A stretch of 64,000 nt of DNA, taken from NCBI GenBank assembly GCA_009859145.1, contig VRVR01000051.1:2549-66548 (forward strand), given 5' to 3'. The first letter of the stretch is position 1. Each line of letters begins with the position of its first letter. The position numbers and the translations under genes are program-made. Positions 19,705 through 60,960 of this stretch are shown one piece after another. The notes beneath the pieces are model-generated. The model was not told the DNA's origin. It did not search any database and saw only the letters and a program-made list of their open reading frames with translations. The stretch comes from Andalucia godoyi And28. Lineage: Eukaryota > Protista > Jakobida.

Positions 19705-20182
19705 CCTGTCTTTTTCTTCTTCCCTTTTCTCTTTCTCTTTCTCTTTCTCTTTCTCTTTCTCTTTCTCTTTTTCTTTTTTTCTTCTCTTTTTTGAAAGAAG
19801 AAAAGAGATGTTGTGCAGTGCGCACTGAGAGGTGCTTATCAGGTAATGCAAGTCTCGAGTTGAAAACGGAAAATTTTGGACGCCCCGGTGGATGTGCCAA
19901 AAATAGCTTTCCGTAGAAGCACGAATTTCCATTTTGGGAAAGTGCACTCCAATATTTTTTGCTTATTTATTTCCTATTCTTATTATTCTTGTTATCCTTT
20001 CATTTTTACGGACATGTCACTGCCGGCATTGGTTGGAAACAACCATGAACCATCGACACAACGAACTCCAACAAGAAAAACGAACTGCATCCAAAAGGAA
20101 GCAAATACATATAAAAGAAGGGGGAAAAACATGCATATAAATAAATAATAATCAAAACAAAATCAAACAAAATCAAACGAAA

Positions 20183-27500: not shown

Positions 27501-29492
27501 TCAATACCAACCGAGTATTTTCCACCAGATGAGACCAACTCCGAGCCAAACAACACAGTGCACAATCGACACAAGAAAACCGACAGCGAACCACCGAGAG
27601 GTCGAGGTGGCTTTGAAGCCAAAGTATATGATGATCGGACCACTCGAGAACGTGGTCAAACACGCACAGAGGCAGCTCATATGCGCAAGCAGTGCTGTCA
27701 GCAAGAACGGAGGAACGGCCAGCATTCGTCCGACATTCATGAACAGCGGAACAAAGCACGTAATGTGAGCAGTAATCATACTGAACGAGTACATACTGTA
27801 AAAATAAATAACAGAAAGAAGAACGCACGTCAAGACTTTGGAGGCGAGCTCCAAATCTCGGACGAAATAGAACACTTGCTCAGCGACCCACGGAAGGAAT
27901 CCTAGTTCGGAAAGACCTTCGGCAAGCGACAGGATTCCGCCCAGCCAAATCAGACAATCGAACGCGCTGCTTTGTCGAATGATGTCATCCCAAGTCAGGA
28001 CGCCGAAAAATACCAGAGATGCCACTGCAGCCAGTGCCGCCACGGCGGTATCCACCGAGTACACCTGACCAGACACCGCCCAGACGAGGACAAGAATCAA
28101 AAACACCATCGCCAGCAATTTTTCCTTTCGGCTCAGAGCTCCCAGCTGAGACAGCATTTGCTCAGCATGATTGCGAGCATCGGAAGAACTGAGATACGAA
28201 TCGGAGATGCGCTTTCGAAATTGTCCAAATGCATTATGCGTCATCGCGGCGCGCTGGTAAACGGCAGAAGCTGAGGTCCGTGGACTTGCTGGTGCTGCTG
28301 CCGAGGAGCCTTTCAGCTTGCCCGGTGCTGGAAGAAACGCGACGAGCGCATACAAAAAGATGGGGACAATGAAAAACGAGACAAGCGCGGGAAGGACGGA
28401 CGACTCCAGCCATTCGATCCACCCAAAGTCGATCTGCAGCTCTGTCTTTGCGGCTTTTGACACCAGCACATTCGGCGCGCTTCCGGTCAGGACGTATGCA
28501 GCACTGATCAGATTGCAGTGCGCGCCGCACAGGATGAGAAACGCTCGAGACCGCCACTGCTGCTCTGTCTTTGGCTCCACAGACTGAACACCCGGCGCCT
28601 CTCCATGCCCAGGCTCATGCCCATGTCCGTATGCATGCCCAGGCGGTTGCTTGATACCGCCTTCGCTGGTGTGTGTCCGTTGCATCTCGATGTCATTGAC
28701 GGACTGTAGCATTGTGTTGCACAGACTGAACACAATCGGAGCCAATATTCCTCCTCCTCGAGCGGTGTTTGACGGGACGATCAGGGCCAGGAAGGCCTCT
28801 GCGACGGCAAACGAGAGCCCAAGCCCCAACAACGACTTTCCCAGCTTGACCATGACCGTCAAGGCGATTCGTCTTCCGAGGCCGGTCTTTTCCACCGCTG
28901 TCGACAGCAAAAACGCCGCCACAACAAGCCAAACCGTCGAGTCTCCGAATCCCGCAAAGATCTGTTGTGAGTTCAGCGTGTGTGTGAACCCGGCAATGCA
29001 CAACGACACGACTGTCACTTGACCCATAGGATACGGATGCAACAGAAAGCCCAAAATCGTAGACACGAAAATCCCAAAGCAGAACCAAGCGGCAAGCGAC
29101 AAACTCGGCGGTCGCGGAACCAGCAGAATCAGAACCGCAAACACATAGCACAGCACGAGCTTTGTAAATGGCGTGCAAAGCACCGACTTCCATAACGGAC
29201 GTCTTGCAGCTGCCGTCCTCACTCCCGCTGCTGCCATAGATATAGTCGATGGCGGTGTCATGAACAACGTATTGGAAGCGGGAGGCGCCGAATATAGAGT
29301 CGAAGGTGATGACACTGTTCCTGCACCCGTCATCGCACTCAACAGAGACGCACCACCGCTACTACTCCCATCATCATCATCATCATCATCAACATTAGTC
29401 AACTTGCTCTCATCAACTCGGTCATGATCGACGTCACCGTCATCGCGACTCGCAAGCATCGGCGTATGCTCTTCAAACTCTTGGTCATCCAT
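27501..29492 (-). CDS. DASS (divalent anion:Na+ symporter) transporter, 2-oxoglutarate/malate translocator (DiT/CitT-like) type
   Basis: GFGDSTVWLVVAAF, TGLGRRIAL, PSNTARGGGILAPI, LTGSAPN, YFYSMYSFSMITAHI and TTFSSGP. ATG at 29492. Confidence 0.88.
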   Translation of the reverse strand: MDDQEFEEHTPMLASRDDGDVDHDRVDESKLTNVDDDDDDDGSSSGGASLLSAMTGAGTVSSPSTLYSAPPASNTLFMTPPSTISMAAAGVRTAAARRPLWKSVLCTPFTKLVLCYVFAVLILLVPRPPSLSLAAWFCFGIFVSTILGFLLHPYPMGQVTVVSLCIAGFTHTLNSQQIFAGFGDSTVWLVVAAFLLSTAVEKTGLGRRIALTVMVKLGKSLLGLGLSFAVAEAFLALIVPSNTARGGGILAPIVFSLCNTMLQSVNDIEMQRTHTSEGGIKQPPGHAYGHGHEPGHGEAPGVQSVEPKTEQQWRSRAFLILCGAHCNLISAAYVLTGSAPNVLVSKAAKTELQIDFGWIEWLESSVLPALVSFFIVPIFLYALVAFLPAPGKLKGSSAAAPASPRTSASAVYQRAAMTHNAFGQFRKRISDSYLSSSDARNHAEQMLSQLGALSRKEKLLAMVFLILVLVWAVSGQVYSVDTAVAALAAVASLVFFGVLTWDDIIRQSSAFDCLIWLGGILSLAEGLSELGFLPWVAEQVFYFVRDLELASKVLTCVLLSVIYFYSMYSFSMITAHITCFVPLFMNVGRMLAVPPFLLTALLAHMSCLCACLTTFSSGPIIIYFGFKATSTSRWFAVGFLVSIVHCVVWLGVGLIWWKILGWY

Positions 29493-29835
29493 CTCGCAGA
29501 TTCTTCTTCTTTTGTTCGTCCCTCTGCGGGTCCTTTCGAGGATGCAGTCGTCGAATGAGAGAACTCCGCAAGTTTCTTCTGCAGAGTGCGGACGATTAGA
29601 GCATCGTTCGTTCGACGGGGCCATCGGGGATTTTGTGCCAAAACGGGGAAAATTCCCGGCTTTGTCTGTTGGTTCCTTAGTTATTTACTATGTTTTTGGT
29701 TCTTCGTTCGACGCGTTAAGCATCGTCTGTGCATCTGATCTTCTTTTCGTTTATGTACGCTGGACTCTGGAGTGCAGAGCGCGGACAAGTTCGAGGAAAA
29801 AGGAAAAGGTAAAAGGTAAAAGAAAAGGCAAGAGG

Positions 29836-31939: not shown

Positions 31940-32194
31940 AAACAAAACCAAATGAACATGAAACATGAAACACCCAAGCTCTTATCGCAATAGCCAACAC
32001 AAATAAGAAAAGCACCTCATACGGACTCATATGAGGTCACTTGAGCATTCTTGCGTTATCATCGTTTGTCTTCATTTGTTTCATTATATGAACTTAATGT
32101 TTTATTATTTATTGTATATTTGATGCTGATGTTTCGAGACAGAGACAGTGGGAGGGAGAGAGACAAGTAGGAAAGAGTGGATACGATTGGAGAA

Positions 32195-34643
32195 ATGTCG
32201 AATGCTGCGTCGTCTGTAATCCAGCTGGACAACAGCAAAGCTGGGATGCAGTCTGTTGACAAGGCGACGGTCGAACGAATCATTTATGAAAACTCCAAGC
32301 ATTCGCTGTTTTATCAGCAGCAACAGAAGAGACATGCGCGGACGCAGGATCGGATTCGCCTTTTGCGAGAGAAGAAGGCGAAGCTGGGTGATTTATCTCG
32401 AGACTCTCGACTGATGCACAGTGTTGATCAGATGTTTTCGGCCGCGACGGCAAGGAGAAATGCAATGCTGGACAGGAATGATCTGGAAAGAGGGCTGGTC
32501 GCAGTCGGAACTCCGATATTTGTACATATTGACATGGATATGTTCTATGCTGCAGTGGAAATCCGCGATCAGCCGCACTTGGCGGACGTGCCGATGGGTG
32601 TTGGAGGCGAAGGCATGCTGTGCACGTCAAACTATAAGGCGCGCGAGTTTGGGGTGCGGGCGGCCATGCCTGGGTTTATTGCGCGGAAGCTGTGTCCGCA
32701 GCTTGTGATTGTGCGGCCCAACTTTGACAAGTACACTGCGGTTTGCCACAAGATAAGAACGGTGCTTGCGACGGAGTTCTTGAACTCCAGGGCTGACATG
32801 GAGTGCATCAGTCTGGATGAAGCATCTCTTGACTGGACGCAGTGGGTTGTATCGCAGAAGGAGGCGGTTACGGAAGACGGGACGATGATTTTGTGGGGAA
32901 AAGTAGGGGAACTCGTCGCGAAGATGAGAAGAAGAATCGTGGAAACGGTGCAGGTCACGTGCTCCGTGGGAGTGGGTCCTTCAAAGACGCTGGCAAAAAT
33001 ATGTTCAGAGAAGCGAAAGCCCGATGACCAGTTTCTCTTGTTTCCCCATTCTTCGACGGTGGACGAGTTTCTGTTGCCCATGGAGGTTCGAAAGATCCGG
33101 GGAGTCGGAAAGGTGACGGCACAGATTCTGACGGATGCTTTCGGCGTTCACAAGCTGTCTGATCTGTATGAACAACGGTACTATCTCAAGGCACTGCTGT
33201 CCGATTTGCAGTTTGAGTTTTTGCTCAGCTCGTATCATGGCTGCATCGAAGATCCTGCTTCGTTTGAATCACCAAAGAAGGAGCGAACACTGGACTCGTT
33301 TTTCCGGAGACAGCCCGGTTCACGGAAGACCGCTTCTGTTCTCGACAGCGGCACTGCCGACTCTGCTGAGGATGCGGATTGCAATGACCGTAATCACCAT
33401 GCAACAGATGAGCGTGGTAGCGGTGGCGGCGACGACGACAACGACAACGACGACGACGACGAGAGATGATGATGATGATGATGATGATGATGACGCCGAT
33501 GATGTTGGGGGCGATGCGAAGAAGCCTGGTGAGAATGGTGTGCGTGGAGTTGGGGATGACGGAGAGCTGGAAGTCTACGTCGAAGGCAGAAAAAGCATCT
33601 CCGTCGAACGGACATTTGCGCATACCAACCGGGTGGATGTCATGATGGATACATGCAAGCACCTGTGTCTCAGCCTCGTCAGGGATATCGACCACATTTG
33701 CTCCAAGATCGGGCAGAACCAGGAAATGGTAGGCCGAACCATCACATTGAAGATTAAGACGGATCACTTTGACTCGCTTCAGCGGTCAAAGAGTCTTCCG
33801 TATGCCGTCAGAGACTTTGATTCGCTGTATCACGTTGCTACAGACCTGTTGAAAACTGAGCTGCAGGCACATCACCAGAAACTTTCTCTGCGCCTGATGG
33901 GAGTCCGTCTTTCCAATCTTGAAATTCGCCGGGTGTCCAAGAAACGGGCTGTCTCGTCAGCATCGTCCTCCCGACATACCGTTGCTGACCCAGACGTGGG
34001 TGTGGCAGAATCGGCAAGCGATCCCCAAACTGACTTTGATCGAATAGGTGTTTCCGACGCCAACCCTGGGCCGCACGACAAGCCTTTCGCCAGAGAAGCG
34101 AATTCTTCCGGCATTGCGTTGGACACGAATATCGATGACGACGAGAGCATGTGTGATCATGAGCTGGAGACGTCGTTTGACGACACTGCGCTGGATTCGC
34201 TGCTTGCGGATACTGTGCACGCAGAGAATTCATCAGCGGCGTCTCGACTGACCTCAGTTGTTCTGGATGAAAGCAAGATGAAGTTGGCTACAACAGCCAC
34301 GTCGACGACGGCCGCAACTCCAACGACGTTGACGACGACGACGTTCCCAAAGACAGCAGACTTGGTGTTCATTTGCTGTCCAGTATGTGGTAAGCGTGAC
34401 AAATCCTTCGTCGATAATGATGCGCTGAATCGCCACATTGACTATTGTTTGAATCGTGAAGCCGTTGCATCCGCGACGTCACTGGCCGAGGACAGCTCTT
34501 GCCAACACGCGCCTCACCAAACCGTCGCCTCTTCTTCCAAGTCTACTAGCCCCGTGCAGAAGAAGAAGCAGAAACAGAAGCAGTCGGATGCAGGGTCTTC
34601 AGAGAAAGTGGATATTTTGTCGTTCTTTGCAAGGAAGATGTAG
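32195..34643 (+). CDS. POLK: Y-family DNA polymerase kappa (DinB), with a frame break at ~33465
   Basis: KAGMQSVDK, HIDMDMFYAAVE, CTSNYKAREFGVRAAMPGFIA and ISLDEA in the first frame. RKSISVERTF, GRTITLKIK, LRLMGVRLS, UBZ (CPVC...LNRHIDYCL) and PIP-like DILSFF in the second frame. Confidence 0.9.
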
Positions 34644-40455: not shown

Positions 40456-40553
40456 CGACACGAACAGGATTCGAACCTGCGCGGGAAATCCCAATCGATG
40501 ATCTAGTTGAAATGAATTCTAGTCGAACGCCTTAACCGCTCGGCCATCGTGTC
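40456..40553 (-). tRNA. trnS-AGA: tRNA-Ser(AGA) with a 17-nt canonical-position intron
   Basis: GACACGATGGCCGAGCGGTTAAGGCG-TTCGA-CTAGAA-[TTCATTTCAACTAGATC]-ATCGAT-TGGGATTTCCCG (long variable arm)-CGCAGGTTCGAATCCTG-TTCGTGTCG, followed by a T-run. Confidence 0.93.
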
Positions 40554-44798: not shown

Positions 44799-44846
44799 TT
44801 TTTCTTTTTCTTTTTTTCTTCCCTCTCTCTCTCTCTCTCTCTCTCC

Positions 44847-44896
<50 letters not shown>

Positions 44897-45129: not shown

Positions 45130-45212
45130 TGTGTGAGTGTGAGAGAGTGAGAGAGTGTGAGTGTGAGAGAGTGAGAGAGTGAGAGAGTGAGAGAGTGAGA
45201 GAGTGAGAGAGA
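45130..45212. repeat. (GAGAGAGT)n-type purine-rich tandem repeat directly upstream of the LRR-anoctamin ATG
   Basis: Seen directly in the sequence. Confidence 0.9.
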
Positions 45213-45222
45213 AAGGGGGAAG

Positions 45223-45483
45223 ATGCTGGATTTGTGTCCGATACTGGAAGACGACTTGTCGATCGTGTCGTTTTCGGATCTTGATGTTCTTGACTTGCGA
45301 GGCGTTTCGACAGTGTCTGGGCTGTCCGAGTTCAACACGGTCGGTACAGCGACAACGCGCGTCCTGCTCGACGAGTGCACGCTTCTGTTCACCCGGTCCA
45401 ACACTGTGCAAAACAAGAAACCACAATCGCAACCGCAACCGTCGCTGCTCAATAGCACCGACGCATACGACAGTTTATCAACA

Positions 45484-45527
<44 letters not shown>

Positions 45528-48500
45528 TGGTAGTAGTAGTAGCGGTAGTGGTAGTGGTAGTGGTAGTGCGTCGCTCGACTTTAGCGCAAAGAGTCGGATT
45601 TCCCAAAGTAATGTGCTGATGCGACTGCTGCCTGCAGTGCACTTATCGCGGTTGTCGCTTGCAAAACTCGTTCCTGCGCCCTCGCTGCTGGAGCTTTTGG
45701 AGAATATCCCGTTTGCATTTCCAATGCTGCAGTGCTTGGATCTGTCCAACACGCCGCTTTCCGCACAGTATCTGACGGCAGTCGCTGCGGCAGTCGCTCC
45801 ATACTCGGCAGTCTCGCATGCGGTTGGAGTCCAGGAACTGTGCTTAGCGGGTTGCGAAATTGATCCAAAGGGTTGCAAGGCGTTCGTCGATGCCGTTTGC
45901 GCGGGCGCGCAGGACTCGGCGCTCCGCGAAAGATCTTCCACCACCACCACCACCACCACCGCCAGTGCGGCCGCCAGTCTCAGCGAAGGACTTCGCGAGA
46001 ATGCGGCAGACGCCTCGGTAGACGCCGCAAGTTCGGCTCGGCTTGCGAATGCCAAGCTTGCACTGCAAATCCTGGATGTTTCTGGGAATTATCTGTCGGC
46101 ATCATCGCTACTCATTCTGTCGGCGGCCTTGCCACCGTCGTTGAAGACTCTCAACGTGGCGAAAAATCCGATCCGAGACTCGGCAAAGTTGGATGCTGCT
46201 GCCGCGGCTTTGGGATCGCTTCCAAACTTGGAGGTCCTCTGTCTGGGCGGGACGATGATGTCCAGCTCGCTGGGCAGGCTGCTCATGATCATAAGTGAAC
46301 TCGGAGCTGTTGCCCGCAAGCAATTTGGGACGTATGCATTATCCACCCTCGACCTGACAAATTCAAAAATGTCTGAAAAGTGCTTTGAAGGACTCTCCTC
46401 GTTGTTGATAGCAGGTGGAGTGCGACTGTCAACATTGATCCTGAATCACATTGTGTTGGACGAAGACGCCTGGGTTGCGTGCCACCAATTCTTCAAAAAC
46501 GCAATCTCAGCGAATACCTTCCTTCGGGTTCTGGAGATCGATAACGTGTTTCCTGCTTATCCATCCATGTTTCCCCAGATGAAATCGCATCAATTGGCCC
46601 TCAGCTTGCCTGCAGAATTTGAGAATGATCCGCGAAGCGCAGTATATGACGGTGACGACGTAGACTTCCTGGTGAGGGAGTTGCTTGCGAGCATTGCGGT
46701 TTCTCCGTCGTTGCAGTCTGTATCGCTGAATGCAAATGGGTTGCATGATGGATACATGGATTTACTGGAACATTTTTGTTTGAAAAAATCCTCTGTGCTC
46801 AAGAAACTGCATGTTGCGCACAATTTCTTGACTAGGTTTCCCTTCGTCGGCGGACCTTCGAAACCCTTGCTGTCCATTCAAAACTCGGCCCCAATGCCCG
46901 ACTTTCCTCGACTGGAGTCGTTTGATTACTCGAAGAATCCAGTCATGTTGACGTCGTTTGCAGTGCAGCTGCCGGTTGTTCCAACATCAACCATTCCCGT
47001 TTCTGCTTCCTCTGCGAAATTGCCGACAAACACCAGTGCGCAGTCCTTCTCTGGAACGATCACAGATGCGTTTTTGGCGACGTTTTTGCCGCACGCTCCT
47101 GGTTTGAAGGAACTGCAGCTCTCCGGCTTGCCAGAAGTAACAATGCCGTTATTGGCGAACATGATTGGATTGTCTGCCATCGTTGGACTGAAGATCGACT
47201 GTTCCTCCTCCGTGGACCAGTCATTGGCCGTGTGCTTGAAGGATCGCAGCGATATGGTTTACGTGAATGGACTGAATCACATCTCGGAAATCACTGCTTC
47301 GTGGCACACCATTGTTGCTCCTTGGAAGTTCTTTGAGTCTCCCTCGAACATTCGGTTCGCCTCTGCTGCTGTTTTCCAGCGTGCTGTCTCCCGATGCATG
47401 CAGACAACCATCTTCCAAGCCTCTCCGCTGTTACTGCAACACGGATTCTCGTTGGGTGCGGCTCTTTCTGCACTGCGGTCGACGCTTGTGGTTCTGGATC
47501 TTTCCGATTGCAGAATTACGGACGAAGTGTTCAGCCGTGAAGTCCTGGGACACATTCCCCATCTTTCGAGTTTGTTGAAGTTGCGCCTCAAAGGCAACTT
47601 GCTCACTCTCGCCTCCATGAAGAAACTGTGTCCTGCCATGGAAAACACGGGCATTACATATGTCTCCCTCAATGTGTCGTATAACAAGCTGGATCTCGAA
47701 GGTCTTGTCTTCGTTACCCAAACGGCTCATAAGTTTTGTCGTAATCTGACAATTGTCCACGATGATATTTTTTCTCCAGCAGCAGCAGCTACAACAACAA
47801 CAACGTCGTCGTCGTCGTCGTCTTCTTTTGGTACTGGTGTTTCCAGTGCGTTCTCTCCTTCTGCGCAAGCTTCAATGAGTCGGATGATCGACATGCTGTT
47901 GCAAATCATGAATCGGCAAGACAGGCATCCCCTTCGATCCTTTTGTGGCATCAATTTTGATCAAGTCACCGCAGTGAATCGCAAAGAATTGACCTTCCGG
48001 CGCTTTTCATCTCAGTTTATGGCCGACATGTATCTTGGACTTGAAGAACGATTGGCGCCGACCACATTGGCGAATATTTGCACTATCGAGTTCGCGAATT
48101 CGTCGTTGTCCCGGTACTCCTTCGGGATCGTTGTCGGCCAACTCATCTGGAAGTGCGAAAACCTCAAACAACTGATTTTCGATAACTGTACCTTTGATCT
48201 TGATTTCTGTCGTGCACTGCAAGAGTACAGCCCCCCTTCGCAGTTGGATCGAGTGGCGTCGCAATTCAACAAGAGTGTGTTTTCCGAGTTTAAGAAGTCC
48301 ACTCGCAAGCCATGTGCCCTCGAATTTCGAAGCTGTCTTGTGCCGACCTTCTCGTTTTTGCTGAACATCAAGCTGTTTTCACTAAAAGAATTGTCCGTGA
48401 TGGACTGGAAGCGGGCCTTGAACGTCGAGGAGGTGGATGTTGGTGGCCCCTCACCTGAAGATTCCAGACCGCTGGAGCTCAGCACTGCGGACATTGGCGA

Positions 48501-51500
48501 TGTCATAGAATCGGAGTTTGCTTCTTCGTCGCTACCTTATTCTGCATCTCATCGTCGAGAATCGACAGATCCGATGATTGAAGTGATTCGATCCATCATC
48601 AATTGCCATGCACAAACGCTGAAACGGATGAACCTGTCAGGATTTCGCAGTTTGTTGAGCGGGGATTCTGAAACGACGTTTGCGACCATTGCTTCGTGTG
48701 AAAAATTGGAAGAACTGGCTGTGGACGCTACCCGCATCGGCAGGGACTCTTTCATGGCCGTTGTTCCGTTGCTCCTCCAGTACTGCTCCTCATTGCGAGT
48801 GCTGTGCGTATCGGGATTGGATCACGGTCAGAACTCCGGAAACGCTCTGTCGCTTGCTCAAGTCCGTCTGCTGCTCGCAGAAGTCCGACAACACAATTCC
48901 ATTCGGGTTCTCGCAGGTGTCTTTCCCGACGATCCATCGTCTGTTGAGTGGAAGAGGCTTTCGCTCGAATTGCGCTGCAATGGAACTCCCGTGATTGACG
49001 TTTCCTACTCTACGGAGGAACTGCAAGACTCTTACTTTGCATTGTGTATTTTGAGATCGATCTTCAAGCGGCAAGCTTGGTTGAACATGTTCGACATCAT
49101 CGAGAGGTTACCAGCAGCGACGTTTCCGTTGTGTCTTCCGCTGATATTTTGTACGGATCATGTTTCCTTTGTCCAGCAATCCGCAAAGGCAACAAAGGCA
49201 TTTGTGGAACGGGTCCCTGTGTTAGTGAACAAGTTCCCAGGTCCGTGGGCATTCGACCTGCAGAAGCTGCAGTTGAATCTGCAAATTGAAGCGGTGCCGG
49301 CCAAGTTGGCGGAGTCAATGATTGTCAGTTGCAACCCTTTGATTCTATCTCACGAGTATTGGTTCGTGGAGCGGGAATTCAGAGACTATGCAGACAAGTT
49401 TTGCAGTTCCAATGGTGTCGACATCTCCCTGTCTGAAATCTATCCTTTTGAAGACGGGTTTTTTGTGGCTCCCGATGATCCTCTTCTTGTGGGAATCCGC
49501 AAGGGGCTGGTCGCATGGGTCGCAAAAGTGTGCAGCGATTCGGAGATCCTCATGCGAACTAAAGTCGTGTTTGACTGTGTTGCCTACATATTCTCGCGAA
49601 CTGCAGGCGGGACGCTGGTGACTCCCTCTCTGAACTCTGCCCCAGGGCTCACTCTCACTCTCGCTTCTTCCTTGCCGGCGAACAGCCAGAGTCCCATGAC
49701 GGATTCTTCCTCTGTCCGGATGCTGCAGTCCCTTCTGGAGCGCGAGCCGCCGTTTGAACAAGCGTGGGTACCCTGGATCGTACGGTCTGTAGGCGTTACG
49801 TATCTCACACAAAGCGGGTCGTCGCTGTTTCACATGACTGCAAAACATGGTTGCACTGTTGTGCTTCTTGAACTATGTGATAGGCTGCATGCGTCATCCG
49901 CAGCTGGCGCACCGAATCTCAGTGCGTTCGATGGCAGCAAGGAATCGACCCTTGCGTTTCTTCTGCGTCGCAATGCCGCTGGCTTCACTGCCAGAGACCT
50001 GACATGCCCAAGGGATGACTGCCGGGAGATTCATGACAAGTTGTTGGCGGAGGAAAACAGAATGTGGGAAACAGCGGCCGATGTTCACGATCAGTATCTA
50101 GAACAAGCTGTGCGGCAGGCGCATTGCGTGCTGATCCGGACGATCCGAGAAGCATCTGCTGGAGAAGAAGCGTTGCTGGCTAGATTTCGAAGCAGCATGA
50201 TGCAGAAATGGCTCACCGTTGACCGATGTCCGCATCCCCATCGGCCAGACCTCGAAGTGTGGTGCATTCGAATGATTCCCTCCCGGGCGGCATTCCTGCA
50301 TTCCACTCTTCCGTCCAACTCCTTTGTCATCGGCCGCAGCGCTTCTCTTGACAACGCTGCAGATCTGAAGTCGCGAGATGCACAAATGACCAATACCTCT
50401 CCCTTCCCGTCTCTTCCTTCCCTTGTGCTGCAGTCGATTGTGCTAGACGTCATGTGCTCAGTGATTCAGACGTCTGTACCTACTCTTCTTCCACAGGGCT
50501 ACTGCCCAAACACGATTTTGGAAATGCTGGAAACCAAGCATTTCAAGGCTGCCTTCTGTCCGCATGAGCCTGCAGAAGTATCAGCCCTCTCGCACGCGTG
50601 GCTCGCGTCTATGGAGCCTCTGACCTCTCTTTCGTCTCGAGAATTTCTTCGCGAGACGCCGTATCATGTGCACGGCGGGCTGCAGATTCTGCGCGACTAT
50701 TTTGGAGAGCATATTGCAATTTATCTGTTGTTCGGCTGCACTCTGTTCTCGCATATTCTGCGACTGTTAATGTTTCTTCTGCTGTTTCATGGCTTCTGCT
50801 GGTACTATGACGTTTCTCGGCATGTCTCTGTCGTGGTGAATTCGTTTGCAATGATTTTTGGAGGAAGGATGCTGTTGACGGCTCTCAGGCAGAAGAGTTC
50901 CGAAGCGTCCTTTGCGTGGGAGGTCCTGGACTATGAAGACGCTCTGGAGCAAGTTCGGCCGCAATTTCGGGGTTTGAAGGGCCTGGTGTCAGTGAATCCG
51001 ATCACAGGGGAAGCAGAACCATATTTTCCATCGTCGAGAAGGCTCCTTCGCGTCCTGTTTTCTGCGTTGATTGCTGGAGGCTTCATGGTTATCGCCGGTG
51101 CAATCAACATCCTCAGGACACACTATGCTCGCAAACTGGAGCTCCTGTCCTCTGCGACCAATGTGGAAGCTGAGGCTGTGTTCTATACGAGGTTGCAAGC
51201 GTCTCTTTCTGTCGGATATGCGATCTCCGTGATCATCATGGCCGGCCTCTATCGGTCGGTCATGATGAAGCTGACGGACTTTGAGAATTGGCGAGCGCAG
51301 TCGCAGTGGGTATCTTCGCTTGTCCTCAAGAACACTGCGTTTTCCTTTGCGAACTCGTACGGTGCCTTGCTGCTGTTCTTGTATCATGGCTACGGCAACG
51401 TTGACACACTGCTCAGCGGCCTGTCTTCTGGCTTAACAAGCTTGCTGATTGCTCGGTTGGCATCGGGACCTGTTATTGAACATGTGTTTCCGCTGCTGCA

Positions 51501-52368
51501 ATTCCGCATTACGGCTCTCCTTTCGCGATCCTCCGTTTTCGGTCGGAAGAAAGACTTTTCTCCCACGTCGTCGTCACTTGCATCCGCATCCCCGTCATCC
51601 AGAGCGTCTTCCGTCGATCGCCAAGGATGGTCAAAACGAAAGGAAAAGTCAGGAAACAAGGCGGCGGGACAGGCAGCAACGTCCAGGACCCATGCTGCAG
51701 GATCCTCTCTTTTCCACCAGCTGCTGATGTCTTCCAAGTCCCCCATGAAGAACGTAGAAGACCGCCTGGACGAGTCGTCTCGGGTGTCGTATGGCGATCA
51801 TTTGTTCTCCGAGTATGCAGATCTCGTTGATGTTTTTGGGCTGCTGTTCTTGTTCGCCGCCAGTGCACCGGGCGCTGTTGCCTTGGCAGCGGTGTATATT
51901 GGCGCCCAGATTAAAGGCGACGTTTTCAAGTTCACGTTTGTCAACCGAAGAACGCAGCGCAGAATCACATCTGGAATCGGAGTGTGGCTTCCGGTGCTTG
52001 AGAACCTATGGATCGCGTCGATCTTTTCGAATGCATTCATGATTGCACATTCTCTCCGGCCGTTTCTAAGTCACATTTGCACGGTCCTCCAATCCGGGAG
52101 GTTCCTGTTTGACGCTGCGCAGATTTATCTGTTGGGAAGCGAAGCCCCGATTGTGCCGCTTGCTGGCTACTGTTCCGATCAGAGTGCTGCGCAAGCAGAT
52201 GTGTCCATTGTCTCATGGATGTGGATCCTCATCGTTGTGTTTTTGCTGTCAACCCTCATGGTGTTTCGCAATCTTGCCGTGGGATCCCTTCGCCACTTGG
52301 CCCCGTGGGTTCGAAAAGAAATCTATCGACAACGACTCCGTCAAAAAGCCAGTCGAAACGTTGCTTAG
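45223..52368 (+). CDS. LRR (RNI-like) + ankyrin-like + anoctamin/TMEM16 fusion protein
   Basis: Many LxxLxLSxNxL units; ankyrin-like SLFHMTAKHGC...RNAAGFTARDL; anoctamin motifs ILRDYFGEHIAIYL, VRPQFRG, LTDFENWRAQSQWVSSLVLK, EYADLVDVFGLLFLFAASAP and DVFKFTFVNRRT...GIGVW. Confidence 0.88.
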
Positions 52369-52653
52369 CCCGTCTCTTAACTTATATTTTACAGCCATCT
52401 TTGATTCACACACTCTGCTTTGTGAGTGTCCCGCACGTTGTACGTATGTGTGTGTGTGTGTGTGTGTGTGTCCGCGAGTTTCTGAGCCTATCGATGTCCC
52501 TCAGAAACTCCCAGTCTGTCTTTCCTACCTCTCAATTTCCAACAAGTATTGCTGTTTGAAACCCGAAAATAAAACAAGTCGAAAGCTCGACACAAAACAA
52601 ACGAAAAAGGGGAAGAAGAAGAAGAAGAAGAAGAAGAAGGAAGGAAGCGCTGG

Positions 52654-55165: not shown

Positions 55166-58100
55166 TTAAAGAACGCCAATACATTGGATGCTGACGTCGA
55201 CAGTTCCCGAAGACGTCCATGCAGCATTTGATCCGGAGGCCGGCGAATACAAGTACAGATCAACATAGGAGATGGAGGGATCGACTTGAAGAAAGAACGG
55301 GGCCCCGGAGAGTTGTGCAGTGCAGATCGGAGCTCTGTGAAATGCACTGGCAAAGGATATTCGCATGAGATTCGAGGCAACGGACGGCGTGGACATCAGC
55401 AAATTCGCCCCGGCCCCCCATGCGGACGGAGTCCCTGCGACGTAGGTTCCGCTGGTGAATCTGCCGGCTGCTGACGCTAGCGACGCAGTCCGCGAAGCAT
55501 GCGAGGCCGGATTCATGATCAGCGTGTGTGCTGCAAATCCGCGAGTGGAAGAAAGCGTGGATGACATTTGCATCTTCGAGCTTGTTCGCAGGGATCCTGA
55601 ACCGGAGAGAGTGAGATGGCCGCGGCTGAGGTGAAGTGCTGAAGTCGGACTGGCGGTGCCAAGACCAACTTTCGGAGACCCAATACCACTCACGACCAAT
55701 GACGGATCCACAGCGCCATCCGAGCCTGTCATCGCAAAACCAATTACACCTTGCGCTCCGGTAGAACGGCGGTTAAAAAGGAGCGAGGATGCGGCCGCCA
55801 ACCCCCAAAACGGTGTGCTTGTGTAAAAGGACGCCGTAACACCGTCGGCCGTTGGAATGGCAGAAGAAGGATCGTCGGAATGATAAAACAGCGTCGAGTA
55901 CGAACTGCGATTCAGCCATCCAGAAGAGCCTCCAATCGTCAGGGACTGTTGCACTCGCAACGAGTACACATCCACATCCGCAATAGGATTCGCATTTCCG
56001 TTTGTGGAAATTCGGCCATCGGACGCTCGGATGATCAACACCAACTGTCTCGCGCCGGAAGACTGCAATGTTTCGTTGTGGCTCCCGATAACCCCTGCAG
56101 TGGACGCAAATGCCGTTGTTCGGGGAGACGGACCGGACTGCCGAAAGAAGACGAAGTCATTGGCGGCATCCATCATGACGTCAAAGTTGTTTCCAAGAGA
56201 ATTATTGCTCTTCCACGTGACACGATTTCCAAGCTGGAAATCAGGTTCCACATAGCTATTCGCCAACACAGGGCGCTCAAGTCGGCCGTTTCCGCTGACA
56301 TCCAAGATATGCGTTGCATACAGTCCCGCAGATGCATTCAGATTCACAGACACGCGACCGAAACCATGAATCGTAAGAGCTGGGACAGGTATCCCAGACT
56401 GCACATTCTCAAACACGATTCCGCCCGAAACATTCTTGTTGGCTTCTGATAAACGAAACTCCATCAAATCGCCGAGTATGTCGCCGAGTACGTACCCCGC
56501 TGCGCTCGAGACGTTAAAGTAATCGCGAATTCTCCAAACATCAAAAATCTTGTTTCCGTGCGACGACCGTGTAATCAAACCGGAATCGGCGAGTCGACTT
56601 GTGTTGACAAAAATGACATTACCGGCAATGTGCAGCTTCTTCAAAGGCAGCATCCGCCCAATGCCGAAATTCCCAGAGATTGCCGCATACGACAACACAT
56701 GCTGGGCACCTCCGTACTGGCCGAAGTACACGACCATGGAATTGTCCGAGATCGACGCATTGACCCGCAACTGGACAGACGACGTATTTCCAATCACAAA
56801 CGGGAAATTCGTCTGCAGCCTTGGCGACTGATTCACAGAGACATTAACGCCCACCGCCCCTGTTGAATCGATGCGAAGTGTCTGCAAGAAGGAGACATGA
56901 CTTGCCCGCCCCACGGAATCGAATGCAAGGCTGAAGAATCGGCCAAATGAAGTGGTCTGGCTTCGTCCGACAAACCCCATTTCTGGGCACTGAATCGCAT
57001 ACAGGTCTGGCCGAACAGACAAGACTCCAAGGTCCACATTTTGACCCTGAACTGTCAGATTTCCAAAAACGTTCACACTTGCTCCCTGTACACTGCCAAG
57101 AACCACAGTATCCAACAACAATGACGGGGACGAAACTTGCAAGATGCTCGCCACAGCAAACGACGTCGCCGACGCGCCAGACGCAACAACGTTGCCAGTA
57201 ACAGACAGGGTTTTCGATAGCATCGCAGCGCCAACATTGATGCTCCGGGTAAGGAGGTCGGTGGAGACAAACCCATTTCCGGTGACAGCCAGAATTCGAC
57301 CAGTTGAAACGGAATCTCTCACCACACAATCTGCGAGTACGTCGATCGCACCCGATACATTGAAAACACCTCGGAAGACTGCATCTCCCCCTGCACGAAC
57401 GACGCCGTTCACTCCCAACGTTCCCGTGATGCTCGTAGACAAATTGAGCACAACAGCAAACTGGGACACAAGCCGGCTCGTCGTCACAGATGCTGCGGCC
57501 TGGACTGTCACAGGAGCTTCGATCACAGCAGATGCTGCCGTCAACGGGCCAAGCACGTACATGTTGTCCGCAAGGGATGCGCTCGACTGTACCAATAGGT
57601 TGCCGGTAGCAGTCATGGAACTTCCGAAAATCGCAGGAGCAGCGGCATTGACGCGAGAAGACGTAACCGGACCTAATGTACAGTTTTCCACGACAAACAG
57701 CGTCAGCAACGACACTGGCGACGACAAAGTCACCAGTTGATTCAGAACTGCGCTGGAGGCAGACGTCGACCCGATCACGACAGCATTCTGAGAAACAAAG
57801 TTCCCAAACATTGCGAATCCCTGAATTTCAAACCCAGCCGAGGCGGCGACGTCGTGAAATTTACAAACGTCCGAGCAAGAAGCGGAAACGTTGCCAAGAA
57901 CGACAACAGAAGACTTGAAAAGACTGGGAAGATTTGGAGATGAAATGACGAGCGCTTCCGAATCCAGTATGCCATTTGTCAAGGATACATTCGACTGAAC
58001 CACGACGTTCCCGTCAGCAACAACAGAGCCCAGCAACGCGACAGAACCAGACAAGCTGTTGCAGGCTGTCATGCCTCTAAAATAGGCCGACGCTGCATGA

Positions 58101-60073
58101 AGGTCCTTGGAAAGGAAAGCACTGCCACCGAAAACAGCATTCCCGTTAGAGATGATACCATGAACAAGCAGCGGTCCTCCAATCACAACTGCCGGTGAGA
58201 ACATTGCTGCACCCGACACCGCAATAGAGTGATTCAAAACAAGCGCTTCCATAGCAAAAGAGCTGTTGATGGCTAATTCACCCATAATCAAACCATTTCC
58301 CAACACCGCAAGTCTCCCCGACACGGCTCCGGAATGCAAACGCACATCGCTAAGAGAATCCATCGATCCAAACAGAGCGAATTCCGCTGCATTGGAAATG
58401 ACATCTCCAAATACAGAGAGGTTCGTGGTGTTCATCGCAAACACGTCGACGCTTTGCAAAAAGGAGACGTTCTGCAACTGCAGTGCCCCAGACAGCTGCA
58501 GTGCAGAACTTGCAACAAGAGATCCATTGAAATCCGAGGTGGCAATGTTTTCGAGGCCAATAAAACGGGCGGAAGTGGATGCAAATATATTCTGAGAACC
58601 CAAAGTCTGAAGACCGAGGACCGTTAGATTGCGATGAAGCTGCACCGATCCAGACACGATGAGGTCCCCCTGCACCTGCCAGGAGTTCGACACGAACACA
58701 GAATGTGCAAAAGCATCCTGGGTCACAGATGTGCTTCTGTTCGCATAGGCATCGGCATCAACCTCTAAGTTATGCATCACCTGCAGGGTTCCAACAGACA
58801 TATTCGACGCAACAGAAACGTGAAGTCCCACAGACGCGTTGCCGAGACTTTGAACGGCACCGCTGAGTTTCATTGCGCTCGTGGCCAACAAGTCACCAAG
58901 AACTGTCGTGTTTGACAGTGACACCGTAGAGCGAAACAATGTCTGTTCAACGAAGAACACATCCGCGGCTTGGACAACAAGACGCTCAAGGTTCACGGCG
59001 AATGCATCCAGACTGGGAGCAGTTCTGAATGTTGGCGGCTGCGATTGTCTCGTAATATTTAGCGATCCACCCTCAAATATGTGGATGGCGCGCGCGACCA
59101 AAGCGCCATCGTGATCACAATTGACGGCATCCAGATTACCGGCTACGCGAACAAGAGACCCATGGAAGGATGACAGTGTGGAGCTGTCCGTTGACAACGC
59201 CCTGGCAAGACCAGACGAGGGGGTGTAGATCGAAATATTGCCTTGAAGCGTCGACAGTGACGCACTCAGGAATGACCGCAGCTCCGCCACCCGAACGGGA
59301 CCGTGGACCGTGGATCGATCGGACACTGTCGCCAGCGAGCGAACATGAAGCTTACGCATGTGCGATACGGTTTCCATCGGCTCAAGTAAATCAATGCGCT
59401 CGACGGTTCCAGAGCCTGAAATCGCCAACGAATGTACAGTGGACGGCGAACTGGATATGAGAAGCGCTCGAGAGCCGAGAAGAGTGAAGCCTGTCGCGTG
59501 GATGCCTCCACGCAGTTGCAGCGGTGCTTGCAGAACGGAAATGCCACGGACTGACAGATTTTGCTGGACGACGACATCCCCGTTGGCAAACACTCCGCCA
59601 CTCGCGAACGTCCCCTTCGAACTGCGAAATGCTGAAACTGTCAGTGATTTGGCCCCCGTGAGCGAACCGGCAATCGCAACCGACCGCAGGAATTGGACCG
59701 GAGCCTCGATTTTCCGCACCGCAATCGCATGCAGGAAGAATATGAACACCGAAACACAAACCGCAAGCAACATCGCGTAGAGCGCAAGCCCAATCACGGC
59801 TCTTCGTGAGGGTGCATAGGGATGGATAATTGGGAACACCTCCCTTTGCAGAGTGCCGTCCAGTGCAAACTCATCGGCTTCGGCAGCCGATCGAGATATA
59901 CGGTTCAGAGGAACAATCGGCGGCAGCGAGCACACGATCTCAGGCGATGCCCCGTGCTCTAACAGATAGCTCCGCACCTGTCGGTCCTCCTCGGAAAAGT
60001 CAGCAAGTGTAAACGGTTGCGAACCCACCGACGGCATCACTTTGGCATTCTTCGGTGACGAAACTTGCAGCAT
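55166..60073 (-). CDS. Type II membrane protein with a long beta-repeat, phage/viral tail-fibre-like ectodomain
   Basis: Single TM helix (AVIGLALYAMLLAVCVSVFIFFL), ~900 aa of GxLxVxG-type repeats, GNFGIG/KVGLGTASPTSALHL repeats and C-terminal RISFASAFHRAP...IQCIG. ATG at 60073. Confidence 0.8.
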   Translation of the reverse strand: MLQVSSPKNAKVMPSVGSQPFTLADFSEEDRQVRSYLLEHGASPEIVCSLPPIVPLNRISRSAAEADEFALDGTLQREVFPIIHPYAPSRRAVIGLALYAMLLAVCVSVFIFFLHAIAVRKIEAPVQFLRSVAIAGSLTGAKSLTVSAFRSSKGTFASGGVFANGDVVVQQNLSVRGISVLQAPLQLRGGIHATGFTLLGSRALLISSSPSTVHSLAISGSGTVERIDLLEPMETVSHMRKLHVRSLATVSDRSTVHGPVRVAELRSFLSASLSTLQGNISIYTPSSGLARALSTDSSTLSSFHGSLVRVAGNLDAVNCDHDGALVARAIHIFEGGSLNITRQSQPPTFRTAPSLDAFAVNLERLVVQAADVFFVEQTLFRSTVSLSNTTVLGDLLATSAMKLSGAVQSLGNASVGLHVSVASNMSVGTLQVMHNLEVDADAYANRSTSVTQDAFAHSVFVSNSWQVQGDLIVSGSVQLHRNLTVLGLQTLGSQNIFASTSARFIGLENIATSDFNGSLVASSALQLSGALQLQNVSFLQSVDVFAMNTTNLSVFGDVISNAAEFALFGSMDSLSDVRLHSGAVSGRLAVLGNGLIMGELAINSSFAMEALVLNHSIAVSGAAMFSPAVVIGGPLLVHGIISNGNAVFGGSAFLSKDLHAASAYFRGMTACNSLSGSVALLGSVVADGNVVVQSNVSLTNGILDSEALVISSPNLPSLFKSSVVVLGNVSASCSDVCKFHDVAASAGFEIQGFAMFGNFVSQNAVVIGSTSASSAVLNQLVTLSSPVSLLTLFVVENCTLGPVTSSRVNAAAPAIFGSSMTATGNLLVQSSASLADNMYVLGPLTAASAVIEAPVTVQAAASVTTSRLVSQFAVVLNLSTSITGTLGVNGVVRAGGDAVFRGVFNVSGAIDVLADCVVRDSVSTGRILAVTGNGFVSTDLLTRSINVGAAMLSKTLSVTGNVVASGASATSFAVASILQVSSPSLLLDTVVLGSVQGASVNVFGNLTVQGQNVDLGVLSVRPDLYAIQCPEMGFVGRSQTTSFGRFFSLAFDSVGRASHVSFLQTLRIDSTGAVGVNVSVNQSPRLQTNFPFVIGNTSSVQLRVNASISDNSMVVYFGQYGGAQHVLSYAAISGNFGIGRMLPLKKLHIAGNVIFVNTSRLADSGLITRSSHGNKIFDVWRIRDYFNVSSAAGYVLGDILGDLMEFRLSEANKNVSGGIVFENVQSGIPVPALTIHGFGRVSVNLNASAGLYATHILDVSGNGRLERPVLANSYVEPDFQLGNRVTWKSNNSLGNNFDVMMDAANDFVFFRQSGPSPRTTAFASTAGVIGSHNETLQSSGARQLVLIIRASDGRISTNGNANPIADVDVYSLRVQQSLTIGGSSGWLNRSSYSTLFYHSDDPSSAIPTADGVTASFYTSTPFWGLAAASSLLFNRRSTGAQGVIGFAMTGSDGAVDPSLVVSGIGSPKVGLGTASPTSALHLSRGHLTLSGSGSLRTSSKMQMSSTLSSTRGFAAHTLIMNPASHASRTASLASAAGRFTSGTYVAGTPSAWGAGANLLMSTPSVASNLMRISFASAFHRAPICTAQLSGAPFFLQVDPSISYVDLYLYSPASGSNAAWTSSGTVDVSIQCIGVL

Positions 60074-60239
60074 CTCTCGTTTAATCGCACAGCGGTGCTC
60101 CGCGGAATCATCCAAGAAATGCCCCTTTAATCAATTCTTCTACGAATACGACTACTCCTAATAATGATGCTGATGGTCATTGGATGAATTGACTCTGGCG
60201 TCCGGGATCGAAGACCGAAAAATTGTTGAAACCACCACC

Positions 60240-60888: not shown

Positions 60889-60960
60889 TGCGCATGCGGG
60901 GAGTCGAACCCCGGTCATAACCTTGGAAGGGTCACATACTAACCGTTGTACTACATGCGC
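60889..60960 (-). tRNA. trnG-TCC: tRNA-Gly(TCC)
   Basis: GCGCATG TAGTACAACGGTTAGTAT G TGACC CTTCCAA GGTTA TGAC CGGGGTTCGACTCCCCG CATGCGC A, with a downstream T-run. Confidence 0.95.

Follow-up and report, generated by a model that had tools for sequence, protein, structure and literature searches.

The longest open reading frame in the 64,000-nt stretch of Andalucia godoyi And28 DNA analysed here (the window) corresponds to a single genuine gene in a protist with few introns, and its product is a giant member of the TMEM16/anoctamin family. The frame starts with an ATG and runs uninterrupted for 2381 codons; in DNA of 51% GC, an open frame of 7146 nt cannot have arisen by chance. When codon usage was scored as log-odds, with six genes from the neighbourhood as the training set, frame 1 beat both alternatives in all eleven 200-codon windows covering aa 1-2200. 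The initial annotation had placed leucine-rich repeats (LRRs), an ankyrin-like segment and an anoctamin domain in one 2381-aa ORF, and this layout stands, the frame being continuous and a coding signal being present in every window scored. The features of the gene are collected in Table 1.

Along the window, the confirmed genes alternate strands every few kb, a pattern on which a kinetoplastid origin was rejected, and the neighbouring genes are housekeeping genes. The PPDK resembles the Trypanosoma enzyme no more closely than it does bacterial ones, and an Rfam search of the window returned two tRNAs only.

The C-terminal ~620 residues were shown, by sequence matching and structure prediction, to form a predicted complete ten-helix TMEM16 domain, which is closest to the intracellular scramblase TMEM16K/ANO10. 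Specifically, Pfam PF04547 matched over model positions 1-459 of 460 (E 3.5e-51; 175 bits, cut-off 28), and the top PDB sequence match was ANO10/TMEM16K (E 2.6e-19). The AlphaFold2 model, built on a 98-sequence alignment, had a pLDDT mostly above 90 over aa ~1765-2381 and a pTM of 0.72. When this model was searched with Foldseek, TMEM16K came first (E ~3e-20, target TM-score 0.63-0.67 over ~626 columns), and all 50 of the PDB matches listed were TMEM16K, TMEM16F, TMEM16A, nhTMEM16 or afTMEM16. The full-length Pfam match and the confident fold agree with the first description of this membrane domain as complete-looking.

Relatives of the protein were sought by an exhaustive HMMER search of 1.84 billion representative proteins, which yielded 1598 anoctamin matches, the best 150 of which were inspected. 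Among these 150, the close relatives were P0002 and P0001/L002 (E 6.9e-44 and 5.6e-55), the next ordinary anoctamin following at 3e-25, and P0002 was the only one to combine LRRs with an anoctamin domain; the domain combination had been called unfamiliar, and its rarity is supported by this count. P0002 is a protein of 2198 aa encoded on the 6.9-kb contig L001 of the Logan assembly of SRR15116022, with Pfam matches to LRRs at aa 155-434 and to Anoctamin at aa 1636-2176, and it shows the same order of LRRs, ankyrin-like segment and anoctamin domain as the window protein. P0001/L002, from JGI metagenome 3300042934, is 33% identical to the window protein and is cut at its 5' end. In the databases, both relatives are unnamed or annotated as 'hypothetical'. 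Metagenome contigs searched with subfamily-specific peptide patterns gave only ordinary anoctamins, mostly at 22-27% identity and on short contigs, and the viral contigs scanned gave no match. Two candidates with a longer upstream region, L010 and L020, were rejected as LRR fusions: they correspond to a 768-aa ORF and an intron-fragmented gene, and lack an LRR arm. Word-indexed homology searches with the whole protein, with aa 1781-2381 and with a three-sequence alignment including P0002 returned no match, their candidate lists being probably swamped by low-complexity words, and a literature search for the LRR-anoctamin combination found nothing relevant.

An exact look-up of the 2381-aa product in the public protein collection found no entry, and nothing in that collection reaches 50% identity with the last 1200 aa of the product, although five of the six neighbouring ORF products tested are present there (source 'eukprot'); the public gene models are therefore without this protein. 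The same absence could be taken to mean that the ORF is an artefact, either two adjacent genes fused by misassembly or by an unrecognised stop or intron, or an untranscribed relic. We regard this as highly improbable, because the 7146-nt frame is unbroken with a coding signal throughout, because an independent assembly, of another organism (58% versus 51% GC), has the end-to-end layout within one ORF, and because the L002 frame remains open from the anoctamin domain upstream to the contig end, with homologous sequence.

Table 1. Features of the giant TMEM16 gene, with positions in the window
Feature	Position (nt)	Strand	Evidence
Single intronless ORF, 2381 codons + stop: LRR - ANK-like - TMEM16	45223..52368	+	Frame-specific coding signal, aa 1-2200
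Ser-rich, low-complexity N-terminus (~125 aa, 31% Ser), from (AGC)n/(AGT)n arrays	45223..45597	+	
LRR block 1, aa 166-226, 2 units	45718..45900	+	Core motifs, unit profile
LRR block 2, aa 280-396, 4 units	46060..46410	+	Pfam LRR_4, LRR_6, LRR_1 above cut-off
LRR block 3, aa 494-548, 2 units	46702..46866	+	Core motifs
LRR block 4, aa 753-827, 2-3 units	47479..47703	+	Pfam LRR_6 match, aa 754-768
LRR block 5, aa 950-1003, 2 units	48070..48231	+	Core motifs
LRR block 6, aa 1159-1198, 1-2 units	48697..48816	+	Core motifs
Ankyrin-like motif, aa ~1527-1600: GSSLFHMTAKHGCTVVLLEL ... NAAGFTARDL; conserved in P0002	49801..50022	+	
Pre-TM cytosolic segment, aa ~1735-1822; common to L002 and P0002 (VL..MC, FCPH, RxYFGE)	50425..50688	+	
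Anoctamin/TMEM16 ten-helix domain (predicted), aa 1823-2369	50689..52329	+	Pfam, PDB sequence match, AlphaFold2, Foldseek
TM6 stretch G2082-P2083-V-I-E2086: Glu kept; Gly-Pro in place of Asn-Gln (TMEM16K) or Asn-Asn (TMEM16A)	51466..51480	+	
Cytosolic TM6-TM7 loop, ~90-aa Ser/Lys/Arg-rich insert (aa 2100-2190), pLDDT <50	51520..51792	+	
TM7 Ca2+ ligands E2197 and D2200 (EYAD)	51811..51822	+	
TM8 Y2225-I-G-A-Q2229-I-K-G-D2233: Asn, Asn and Glu replaced, Asp kept (canonical N-N-x-x-E-x-x-x-D)	51895..51921	+	

Upstream of the membrane domain, LRR core motifs number 15 in aa 1-1330, compared with 6.0 +/- 2.4 in shuffled sequences. They make up 13-15 units of the ribonuclease inhibitor (RI) type, arranged in six blocks between aa 166 and 1198, with low-complexity and other sequence between the blocks. 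Adjacent units within blocks are 26-37 residues apart, in keeping with the RI-type repeat of ~26-29 residues and its LxxLxLxx(N/C)xL cores. Searched alone, aa 130-600 exceeded the Pfam cut-offs for LRR_4 (30.4 bits, cut-off 27), LRR_6 (28.5, cut-off 23.4) and LRR_1 (26.0, cut-off 20.6). A profile of 13 units had as its top PDB matches ribonuclease inhibitor (E 2.9e-25), RanGAP1 and NLRP5/NLRP1, together with several axonemal or flagellar LRR proteins; the units had been chosen by an LRR regular expression, and therefore only the class ranking of these matches counts as independent evidence. The RI-type LRRs of the initial annotation are thus real, but they form separate blocks and not ~1300 continuous residues. 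An AlphaFold2 prediction of aa 126-1325 from a two-sequence alignment only had a mean pLDDT of 31, with no solenoid shape readable, and phmmer searches of the PDB with aa 130-600 and aa 1331-1822 turned up no informative match.

The ankyrin-like segment consists of one clear GxxxLHxxAxxG...LL unit and the beginning of a second, conserved with P0002 and predicted by AlphaFold2 with low confidence. Specifically, aa 1532-1612 align to P0002 aa 1353-1420 (BLASTP E 0.001), with a local alignment score 8.3 SD above shuffled sequences, and a two-sequence profile of this stretch matched almost only ankyrin-repeat proteins in the PDB (best E 8.7e-4). Pfam Ank gave no match, neither in the whole protein nor in segments scanned separately. 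The motif first noticed here is therefore reproducible in P0002 and in the PDB matches, but weak.

Aligned locally or globally and compared with shuffles, the LRR arm of the window protein shows no significant similarity to that of P0002, beyond the fact that both match LRR models; only their common layout speaks for a common origin of the arms. A hydrophobic-segment analysis of the whole protein found no signal peptide and no transmembrane helix before aa ~1831. Since the N-termini of TMEM16 proteins are cytosolic, we conclude that the whole arm of ~1800 residues is cytoplasmic, and that only an intracellular partner could therefore be sensed by it.

TMEM16 channels and scramblases are gated by Ca2+ through acidic residues in TM6-8. 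Mapping on TMEM16K (E448/D497/E500/E529/D533 and N444/Q445/N525) showed that four of the five acidic ligands distributed over TM6, TM7 and TM8 are kept (E2086, E2197, D2200 and D2233), the Glu of TM8 being replaced by Q2229. None of the three additional polar (Asn/Gln) ligands, two in TM6 and one in TM8, is present: their places are taken by G2082 and P2083 in TM6 and by Y2225/I2226 in TM8. The readings EYADL for TM7 and YIGAQIKGD for TM8 were confirmed in their context (LFSEYADLV and AVYIGAQIKGD), and the alignment agrees with the earlier remark that the N and E of the TM8 motif are replaced. The TM7 sequence represents a conservative E-to-D change, TMEM16K itself having D as its first TM7 ligand and E as its second. 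Hence the site, proposed to be partly degenerate, has indeed lost the TM8 Glu and the Asn ligands, but is only weakened, as four acidic ligands stay. In TMEM16A, Ca2+ sensitivity moves from the sub-micromolar to the millimolar range when any one of the five acidic positions is neutralised by Gln or Ala, and three Asn also coordinate Ca2+ in the TMEM16 site (PMC8640346, review).

In the 98 homologues aligned, the column of the TM8 Glu holds E or D in 89 and Q in 3. At least one acidic position deviates in 15-18 of these 98 closest homologues, and deviant Ca2+ sites are therefore not exceptional. Q2229 is not a sequencing error, since the Gln (codon CAG) is common to L002, which also shares the Gly-Pro of TM6 with the window protein and differs in having Ser as the second TM7 acid. 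P0002, in contrast, keeps the canonical NNxxE...D and EYxE motifs. As P0002 combines the same architecture with a canonical Ca2+ site, the fusion and the degeneration of the site are separate events.

On the strength of these sequence features, we consider it somewhat probable that the protein is a TMEM16K-like scramblase or channel of low Ca2+ sensitivity, bearing a cytosolic LRR scaffold that would bind partners or act as a tether. Its membrane domain would form a dimer, probably in an internal membrane, and work there as a phospholipid scramblase and/or non-selective channel of the TMEM16 type. Its Ca2+ sensitivity is expected to lie far below that of canonical TMEM16 proteins, and with low Ca2+ sensitivity the activity would be basal or more reliant on other inputs, a candidate for which is the Ser/Lys-rich TM6-TM7 loop adjoining the gate. 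The LRR/ANK arm would be a cytosolic protein-binding scaffold that may position or tether the window protein itself, or act on the gate by way of a bound partner, in the manner in which the cytosolic LRR domains of LRRC8 may modulate their own pore; the window protein would not be a receptor for outside ligands.

Human TMEM16K/ANO10 (PDB 5oc9, 6r65, 6r7x) resides in the ER, where it scrambles lipids on activation by Ca2+ and also serves as a non-selective channel. The window protein shares with it the ten-helix TMEM16 fold and has acidic counterparts of E448, D497, E500 and D533. It differs in carrying Gln for E529 and Gly/Pro/Tyr for N444/Q445/N525, and in the ~90-aa insert of the TM6-TM7 loop; identity is ~19-25%, and TMEM16K has ~660 aa with an N-terminal domain of ~190 aa, whereas the window protein has ~1600 further residues of LRR and ankyrin-like sequence. 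The fungal nhTMEM16 and afTMEM16, non-animal TMEM16 lineages of the same fold, scramble lipids and conduct ions and are partly active without Ca2+, thus providing a precedent for a partly Ca2+-independent function; they match at E 1e-8 to 1e-6 and, unlike the window protein, have a canonical Ca2+ site and no repeat-domain extension. LRRC8/VRAC offers a functional analogy, with no homology claimed, in that a pore is covalently joined to a cytosolic LRR domain. The window protein is not a member of that family, its pore being of the TMEM16 type and its LRRs N-terminal, whereas LRRC8 has a pannexin-like four-helix hexamer pore followed by C-terminal, regular LRRs of ~400 aa. Rearranged cytosolic LRR domains of LRRC8 have been implicated in channel activation (PMC13586329).

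NLR sensors use LRRs of the RI type, and the unit profile has NLRP5/NLRP1 among its top PDB matches. Together with the weakened Ca2+ site, the fast divergence of the LRR sequence between relatives, as expected of recognition surfaces, and the rarity of the architecture (P0002 only among the best 150 of 1598 matches), this would suit a sensor-effector protein in which the LRR arm binds a ligand, for instance a danger molecule or one from a pathogen, to open the scramblase or pore without Ca2+, as in receptor-plus-pore modules of immunity and cell death. We nevertheless hold this to be rather improbable. LRRs of this type are just as characteristic of RanGAP, axonemal and scaffold proteins, and Pfam searches of the whole protein and of four segments (E up to 5) revealed no NACHT/NB-ARC, TIR, CARD, death or other signalling domain, so that the central NACHT/NB-ARC-type NTPase of NLR/STAND proteins is missing. 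Four of the five acidic Ca2+ ligands are kept, and the neighbours are housekeeping genes with no defence cluster. In addition, P0002 has the same architecture with a fully canonical Ca2+ site, and the LRR fusion therefore did not arise to replace Ca2+ gating.

A further proposal makes the LRR/ANK arm the primary gate: a bound cytosolic partner, or a cytoskeletal force passed on by the repeat solenoid in the way the ankyrin spring of NOMPC transmits force, would open the path for lipids or ions with little or no Ca2+, the Ca2+ site of the window protein and of L002 having been let decay (Glu to Gln, and Asn-Gln/Asn-Asn to Gly-Pro in TM6). We put this forward as a speculative and quite unlikely possibility; if true, it would add a new mode of gating to the TMEM16 superfamily.

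The arm might instead serve an inactive TMEM16 domain, used mainly as an anchor as has been suggested for yeast Ist2 and ANO8, by linking the membrane in which it sits to another organelle, the cytoskeleton or the flagellar apparatus. Ist2 and ANO8/TMEM16H likewise join a TMEM16 domain to a long cytosolic extension, although theirs are C-terminal and disordered or lipid-binding instead of N-terminal and made of LRR/ANK sequence. Mammalian ANO8/TMEM16H is a contact-site tether, and RIIa/EF-hand proteins, one of which is encoded in the window and hints at a flagellate, are often flagellar. Yeast Ist2 has been described as a tether between the ER and the plasma membrane (PMC5812556). The great length of the cytosolic extension (~1800 aa), the axonemal or flagellar proteins among the top PDB matches of the LRR profile, and the degeneration of the Ca2+ site, which goes further in L002, with its Ser in TM7, than in the window protein, all point the same way. 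A purely tethering role nonetheless appears unlikely, given the completeness of the TMEM16 domain and its confidently predicted fold, and given that the family-specific motifs KGDxFKF, GIGVWLP and EPYFPS, around the gate and the Ca2+ site, are conserved across three relatives only ~30% identical, which argues for selection on more than anchoring.

To our knowledge, structural and mechanistic work on TMEM16 proteins has dealt almost entirely with animal and fungal proteins whose N-terminal domains are short. The gene described here shows that very large genes made of a single exon can be absent from public gene models, and its practical importance is modest for now. For the family, a TMEM16K-like domain and a repeat scaffold of ~1800 residues are joined in one protein, and the intact Ca2+ site of P0002, set against the decayed sites of the window protein and L002, offers a natural comparison for control of the TMEM16 gate other than by Ca2+. 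The same trio also bears on the role of large cytosolic appendages.

The ORF at 45223–52368 (+) is an ATG-started open frame of 2381 residues, the longest of the 64 kb. A codon log-odds score, trained on six neighbours of clear Pfam identity, was positive for frame 1 and negative for the other two frames in 11 of 11 200-codon windows (aa 1–2200), and the frame 1 signal also covered the stretch linking the repeat region to the membrane domain. Codon-position GC is like that of the neighbouring genes. This unbroken frame, with its coding signal in all the windows scored, upholds the single ORF proposed in the initial annotation; an annotation or assembly artefact is argued against by the conservation of the single-ORF layout in P0002, a 2198-aa relative. 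Its divergent neighbour is a LicD-family gene and its convergent neighbour a PAQR/HlyIII-family gene, and microsatellite-rich intergenic DNA flanks the gene on both sides (Table). As SLSL, ERER and CVCV runs occur in the translated ends of neighbouring ORFs, microsatellites seem to be abundant genome-wide.

The window comes from a eukaryote poor in introns, in which genes alternate between strands and GC is ~51%; it encodes a pyruvate phosphate dikinase (PPDK) and a RIIa/EF-hand protein, the latter hinting at a flagellate. The PPDK ORF at 17047–19947 (-) has GTG as its listed start and begins ~90 residues ahead of the alignment with bacterial, plant and trypanosome PPDKs; the true start may lie further downstream, or a targeting extension may be present. 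The DinB/Pol-kappa-like gene at 32177–34643 (+) is broken up into two ORFs that overlap and differ in frame, the switch falling inside an Asp/Thr-rich low-complexity repeat, and this split is either a frameshift in the repeat or a short intron. No Pfam family matches the 1649-aa ORF at 55166–60115 (-), whose Ser/Val/Ala/Asn-rich product has one N-terminal hydrophobic stretch and resembles a large repetitive protein of the surface or beta-solenoid type. A tRNA-Gly(TCC) at 60889–60960 was called by Rfam and ARAGORN alike; a 98-nt tRNA at 40456–40553 (-), called by Rfam (45.7 bits) and not reported by ARAGORN, possibly contains an intron.

Residues 1823–2369 gave an end-to-end match to Pfam Anoctamin (E 3.5e-51), and the best PDB sequence matches were, in order, ANO10/TMEM16K (2.6e-19), ANO6 (1e-14), afTMEM16 (1.6e-8), nhTMEM16 (1e-6) and ANO1 (3e-3). 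The AlphaFold2 model of aa 1326–2381, built on a 98-sequence alignment, reached a pTM of 0.72; except in the TM6–TM7 loop, its pLDDT exceeds 90 over most of the stretch between ~aa 1765 and the C-terminus. When this model was searched with Foldseek, the top seven matches were TMEM16K chains (E between 3e-20 and 9e-18, target TM-score 0.63–0.67, ~626 columns), followed by fungal scramblases, TMEM16F and TMEM16A. The protein therefore belongs to the TMEM16 family by profile and fold, and its membrane domain, initially described as a complete-looking anoctamin domain, is indeed complete and TMEM16K-like. The cytosolic TM6–TM7 loop carries a ~90-residue Ser/Lys/Arg-rich insert adjoining the gating helix. 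An Ist2/ANO8-like tether, in which the membrane domain would be inactive, is disfavoured by the strong conservation of the gate-proximal motifs.

The Ca2+ site was mapped through a phmmer alignment to TMEM16K and a three-way alignment of the window protein, P0002 and the product of L002, a metagenome contig (Table). The replacement of the TM8 Asn and Glu noticed at the outset was confirmed (Y2225/I2226 and Q2229). The Q2229 codon is CAG in the window and likewise in L002, and the Glu-to-Gln change, being common to two organisms, is real. Of 98 homologues, 89 have E/D and 3 have Q in the TM8 Glu column. The window protein and P0001, the 474-aa relative encoded on L002, are the only two with Pro at the 2083 column, and at least one acidic position deviates in 15–18 of the 98, some via alignment gaps. 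Neutralising any one of the five acidic residues in TMEM16A takes its Ca2+ sensitivity from the sub-micromolar into the millimolar range, and three Asn are further Ca2+ ligands (PMC8640346). Given these effects and the ligand replacements, the Ca2+ affinity of the window protein is expected to be much reduced, which does not necessarily imply Ca2+ independence. As P0002 has a canonical Ca2+ site, the LRR fusion is older than the decay of the site and independent of it.

Table. Coordinates of microsatellites and split ORFs, and Ca2+-site residues (TMEM16K numbering)
Feature	Window	Strand	L002	P0002	Remark
Split DinB/Pol-kappa-like ORF	32177..33469	+			Pfam IMS match
Split DinB/Pol-kappa-like ORF	33135..34643	+
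Microsatellite upstream of gene	44823-44893				(CT)14(TG)22; long, perfect
Microsatellite upstream of gene	45131-45211				(GTGAGAGA)10; long, perfect
Microsatellite downstream of gene	52447-52471				(TG)12; long, perfect
Microsatellite downstream of gene	52612-52639				(GAA)9; long, perfect
TM6 N444 / Q445	G2082 / P2083		G / P	E / L
TM6 E448	E2086		E	E
TM7 D497	E2197		E	E
TM7 E500	D2200		S	E
TM8 N525 / N526	Y2225 / I2226		F / C	N / N
TM8 E529	Q2229		Q	E
TM8 D533	D2233		D	D

Hydropathy revealed neither a TM-grade segment N-terminal to aa 1831 nor an N-terminal signal sequence, and the N-termini of TMEM16 proteins are cytosolic, as established by solved structures; residues up to ~1800 therefore lie in the cytoplasm. 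LRR core motifs numbered 15 in aa 1–1330 against 6.0 +/- 2.4 in shuffles, with no enrichment over shuffles elsewhere in the protein, and aa 130–600 scanned alone matched Pfam LRR_4, LRR_6 and LRR_1 above cut-offs. Thirteen 28-residue units aligned without gaps, and their profile best matched ribonuclease inhibitors (2.9e-25 to 4e-15), RanGAP1, NLRP5 and NLRP1 in the PDB; because the units were picked by an LRR regex, matches to LRR proteins are partly circular, while the ranking of the ribonuclease inhibitor (RI) class is not. The RNI-like class first assigned to this region thus stands, but its length of ~1300 aa was overstated, since the units form six blocks within aa 166–1198, with low-complexity runs and unassigned sequence in between. 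The AlphaFold2 model of aa 126–1325 had a mean pLDDT of 31 and is hence uninformative on the shape of the arm.

The window protein has no Pfam Ank match, but in its ankyrin-like segment aa 1532–1612 (GSSLFHMTAKHGCTVVLLEL...NAAGFTARDL) align with P0002 1353–1420 (GNSVLHLAAKDACAEILDHIL...NSHGLIPRDL; BLASTP E 0.001), and the middle regions of the two proteins scored locally 8.3 SD over shuffles, with cross-controls at 0–1.4 SD. A two-sequence profile of this stretch retrieved from the PDB nearly exclusively ankyrin-repeat proteins and DARPins (best E 8.7e-4), and we read it as one to two putative degenerate ankyrin repeats. On L002, the TMEM16 gene is followed immediately, on its own strand, by a gene for an ankyrin-repeat protein (2202–2792 (+), several Pfam Ank families); in the window protein an ankyrin-like motif is fused in cis.

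An exhaustive HMMER search with aa 1182–2381 against 1.84 billion representative proteins returned 1598 matches, three of them below 1e-30. P0002, encoded on a 6909-bp contig of an SRR15116022 assembly, carries Pfam LRR at aa 155–434 and Anoctamin at 1636–2176, and thus shares the architecture although it belongs to another organism (58% vs 51% GC). Among the best 150 of the 1598 matches, P0002 alone scored with the LRR-unit profile, and no LRRs were found in the other long matches scanned. P0001, labelled 'hypothetical protein', comes from the 2806-bp JGI contig L002, whose frame is open to the 5' end; the extra 117 residues align to the pre-TM segment of the window protein (VL..MC, FCPH), which makes P0001 a truncated version of a longer protein. 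P0003 (2374 aa, below 1e-30) shows four tandem anoctamin copies in one model, probably merged tandem genes, though it may be a real fusion; P0102 (1367 aa), with an ammonium-transporter domain (aa 282–507) and an anoctamin domain (aa 804–1307), may be a merged model or a real fusion. Scans of metagenome and viral contigs yielded no closer relatives. The 2381-aa product, or any protein with at least 50% identity to its C-terminal half, is absent from the protein collection, in which 5 of 6 neighbouring ORF products tested occur as exact members (source 'eukprot'). The 707-aa Na/sulfate symporter ORF (27504–29624) is absent likewise, and public gene models of both loci apparently differ or are missing; for the 2381-aa product, withholding from the collection is the alternative explanation.

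In conclusion, a single ORF encodes a cytosolic arm of RI-type LRRs, which bears an ankyrin-like motif and is joined to a complete TMEM16K-like domain with a weakened Ca2+ site. Such a protein would act as a dimer, scrambling lipids and/or forming a non-selective channel, probably in an internal membrane, with an activity that may be less Ca2+-dependent than usual. Cytosolic partners bound by the arm would position or tether the protein or modulate it allosterically, by analogy with the LRR domains of LRRC8. The immune-like sensor-effector first suggested finds no supporting domain or genomic context. Lack of an NTPase domain rules out an NLR, and a different pore rules out an LRRC8 protein; the protein fits the TMEM16 family by profile and fold but lacks the full set of Ca2+ ligands. 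A literature search found no description of an LRR–anoctamin fusion, and the close relatives are all unnamed. Domain accretion is common in protist proteins, and the data demonstrate no new mechanism; the protein is a natural experiment on non-Ca2+ control, of interest to TMEM16 specialists.
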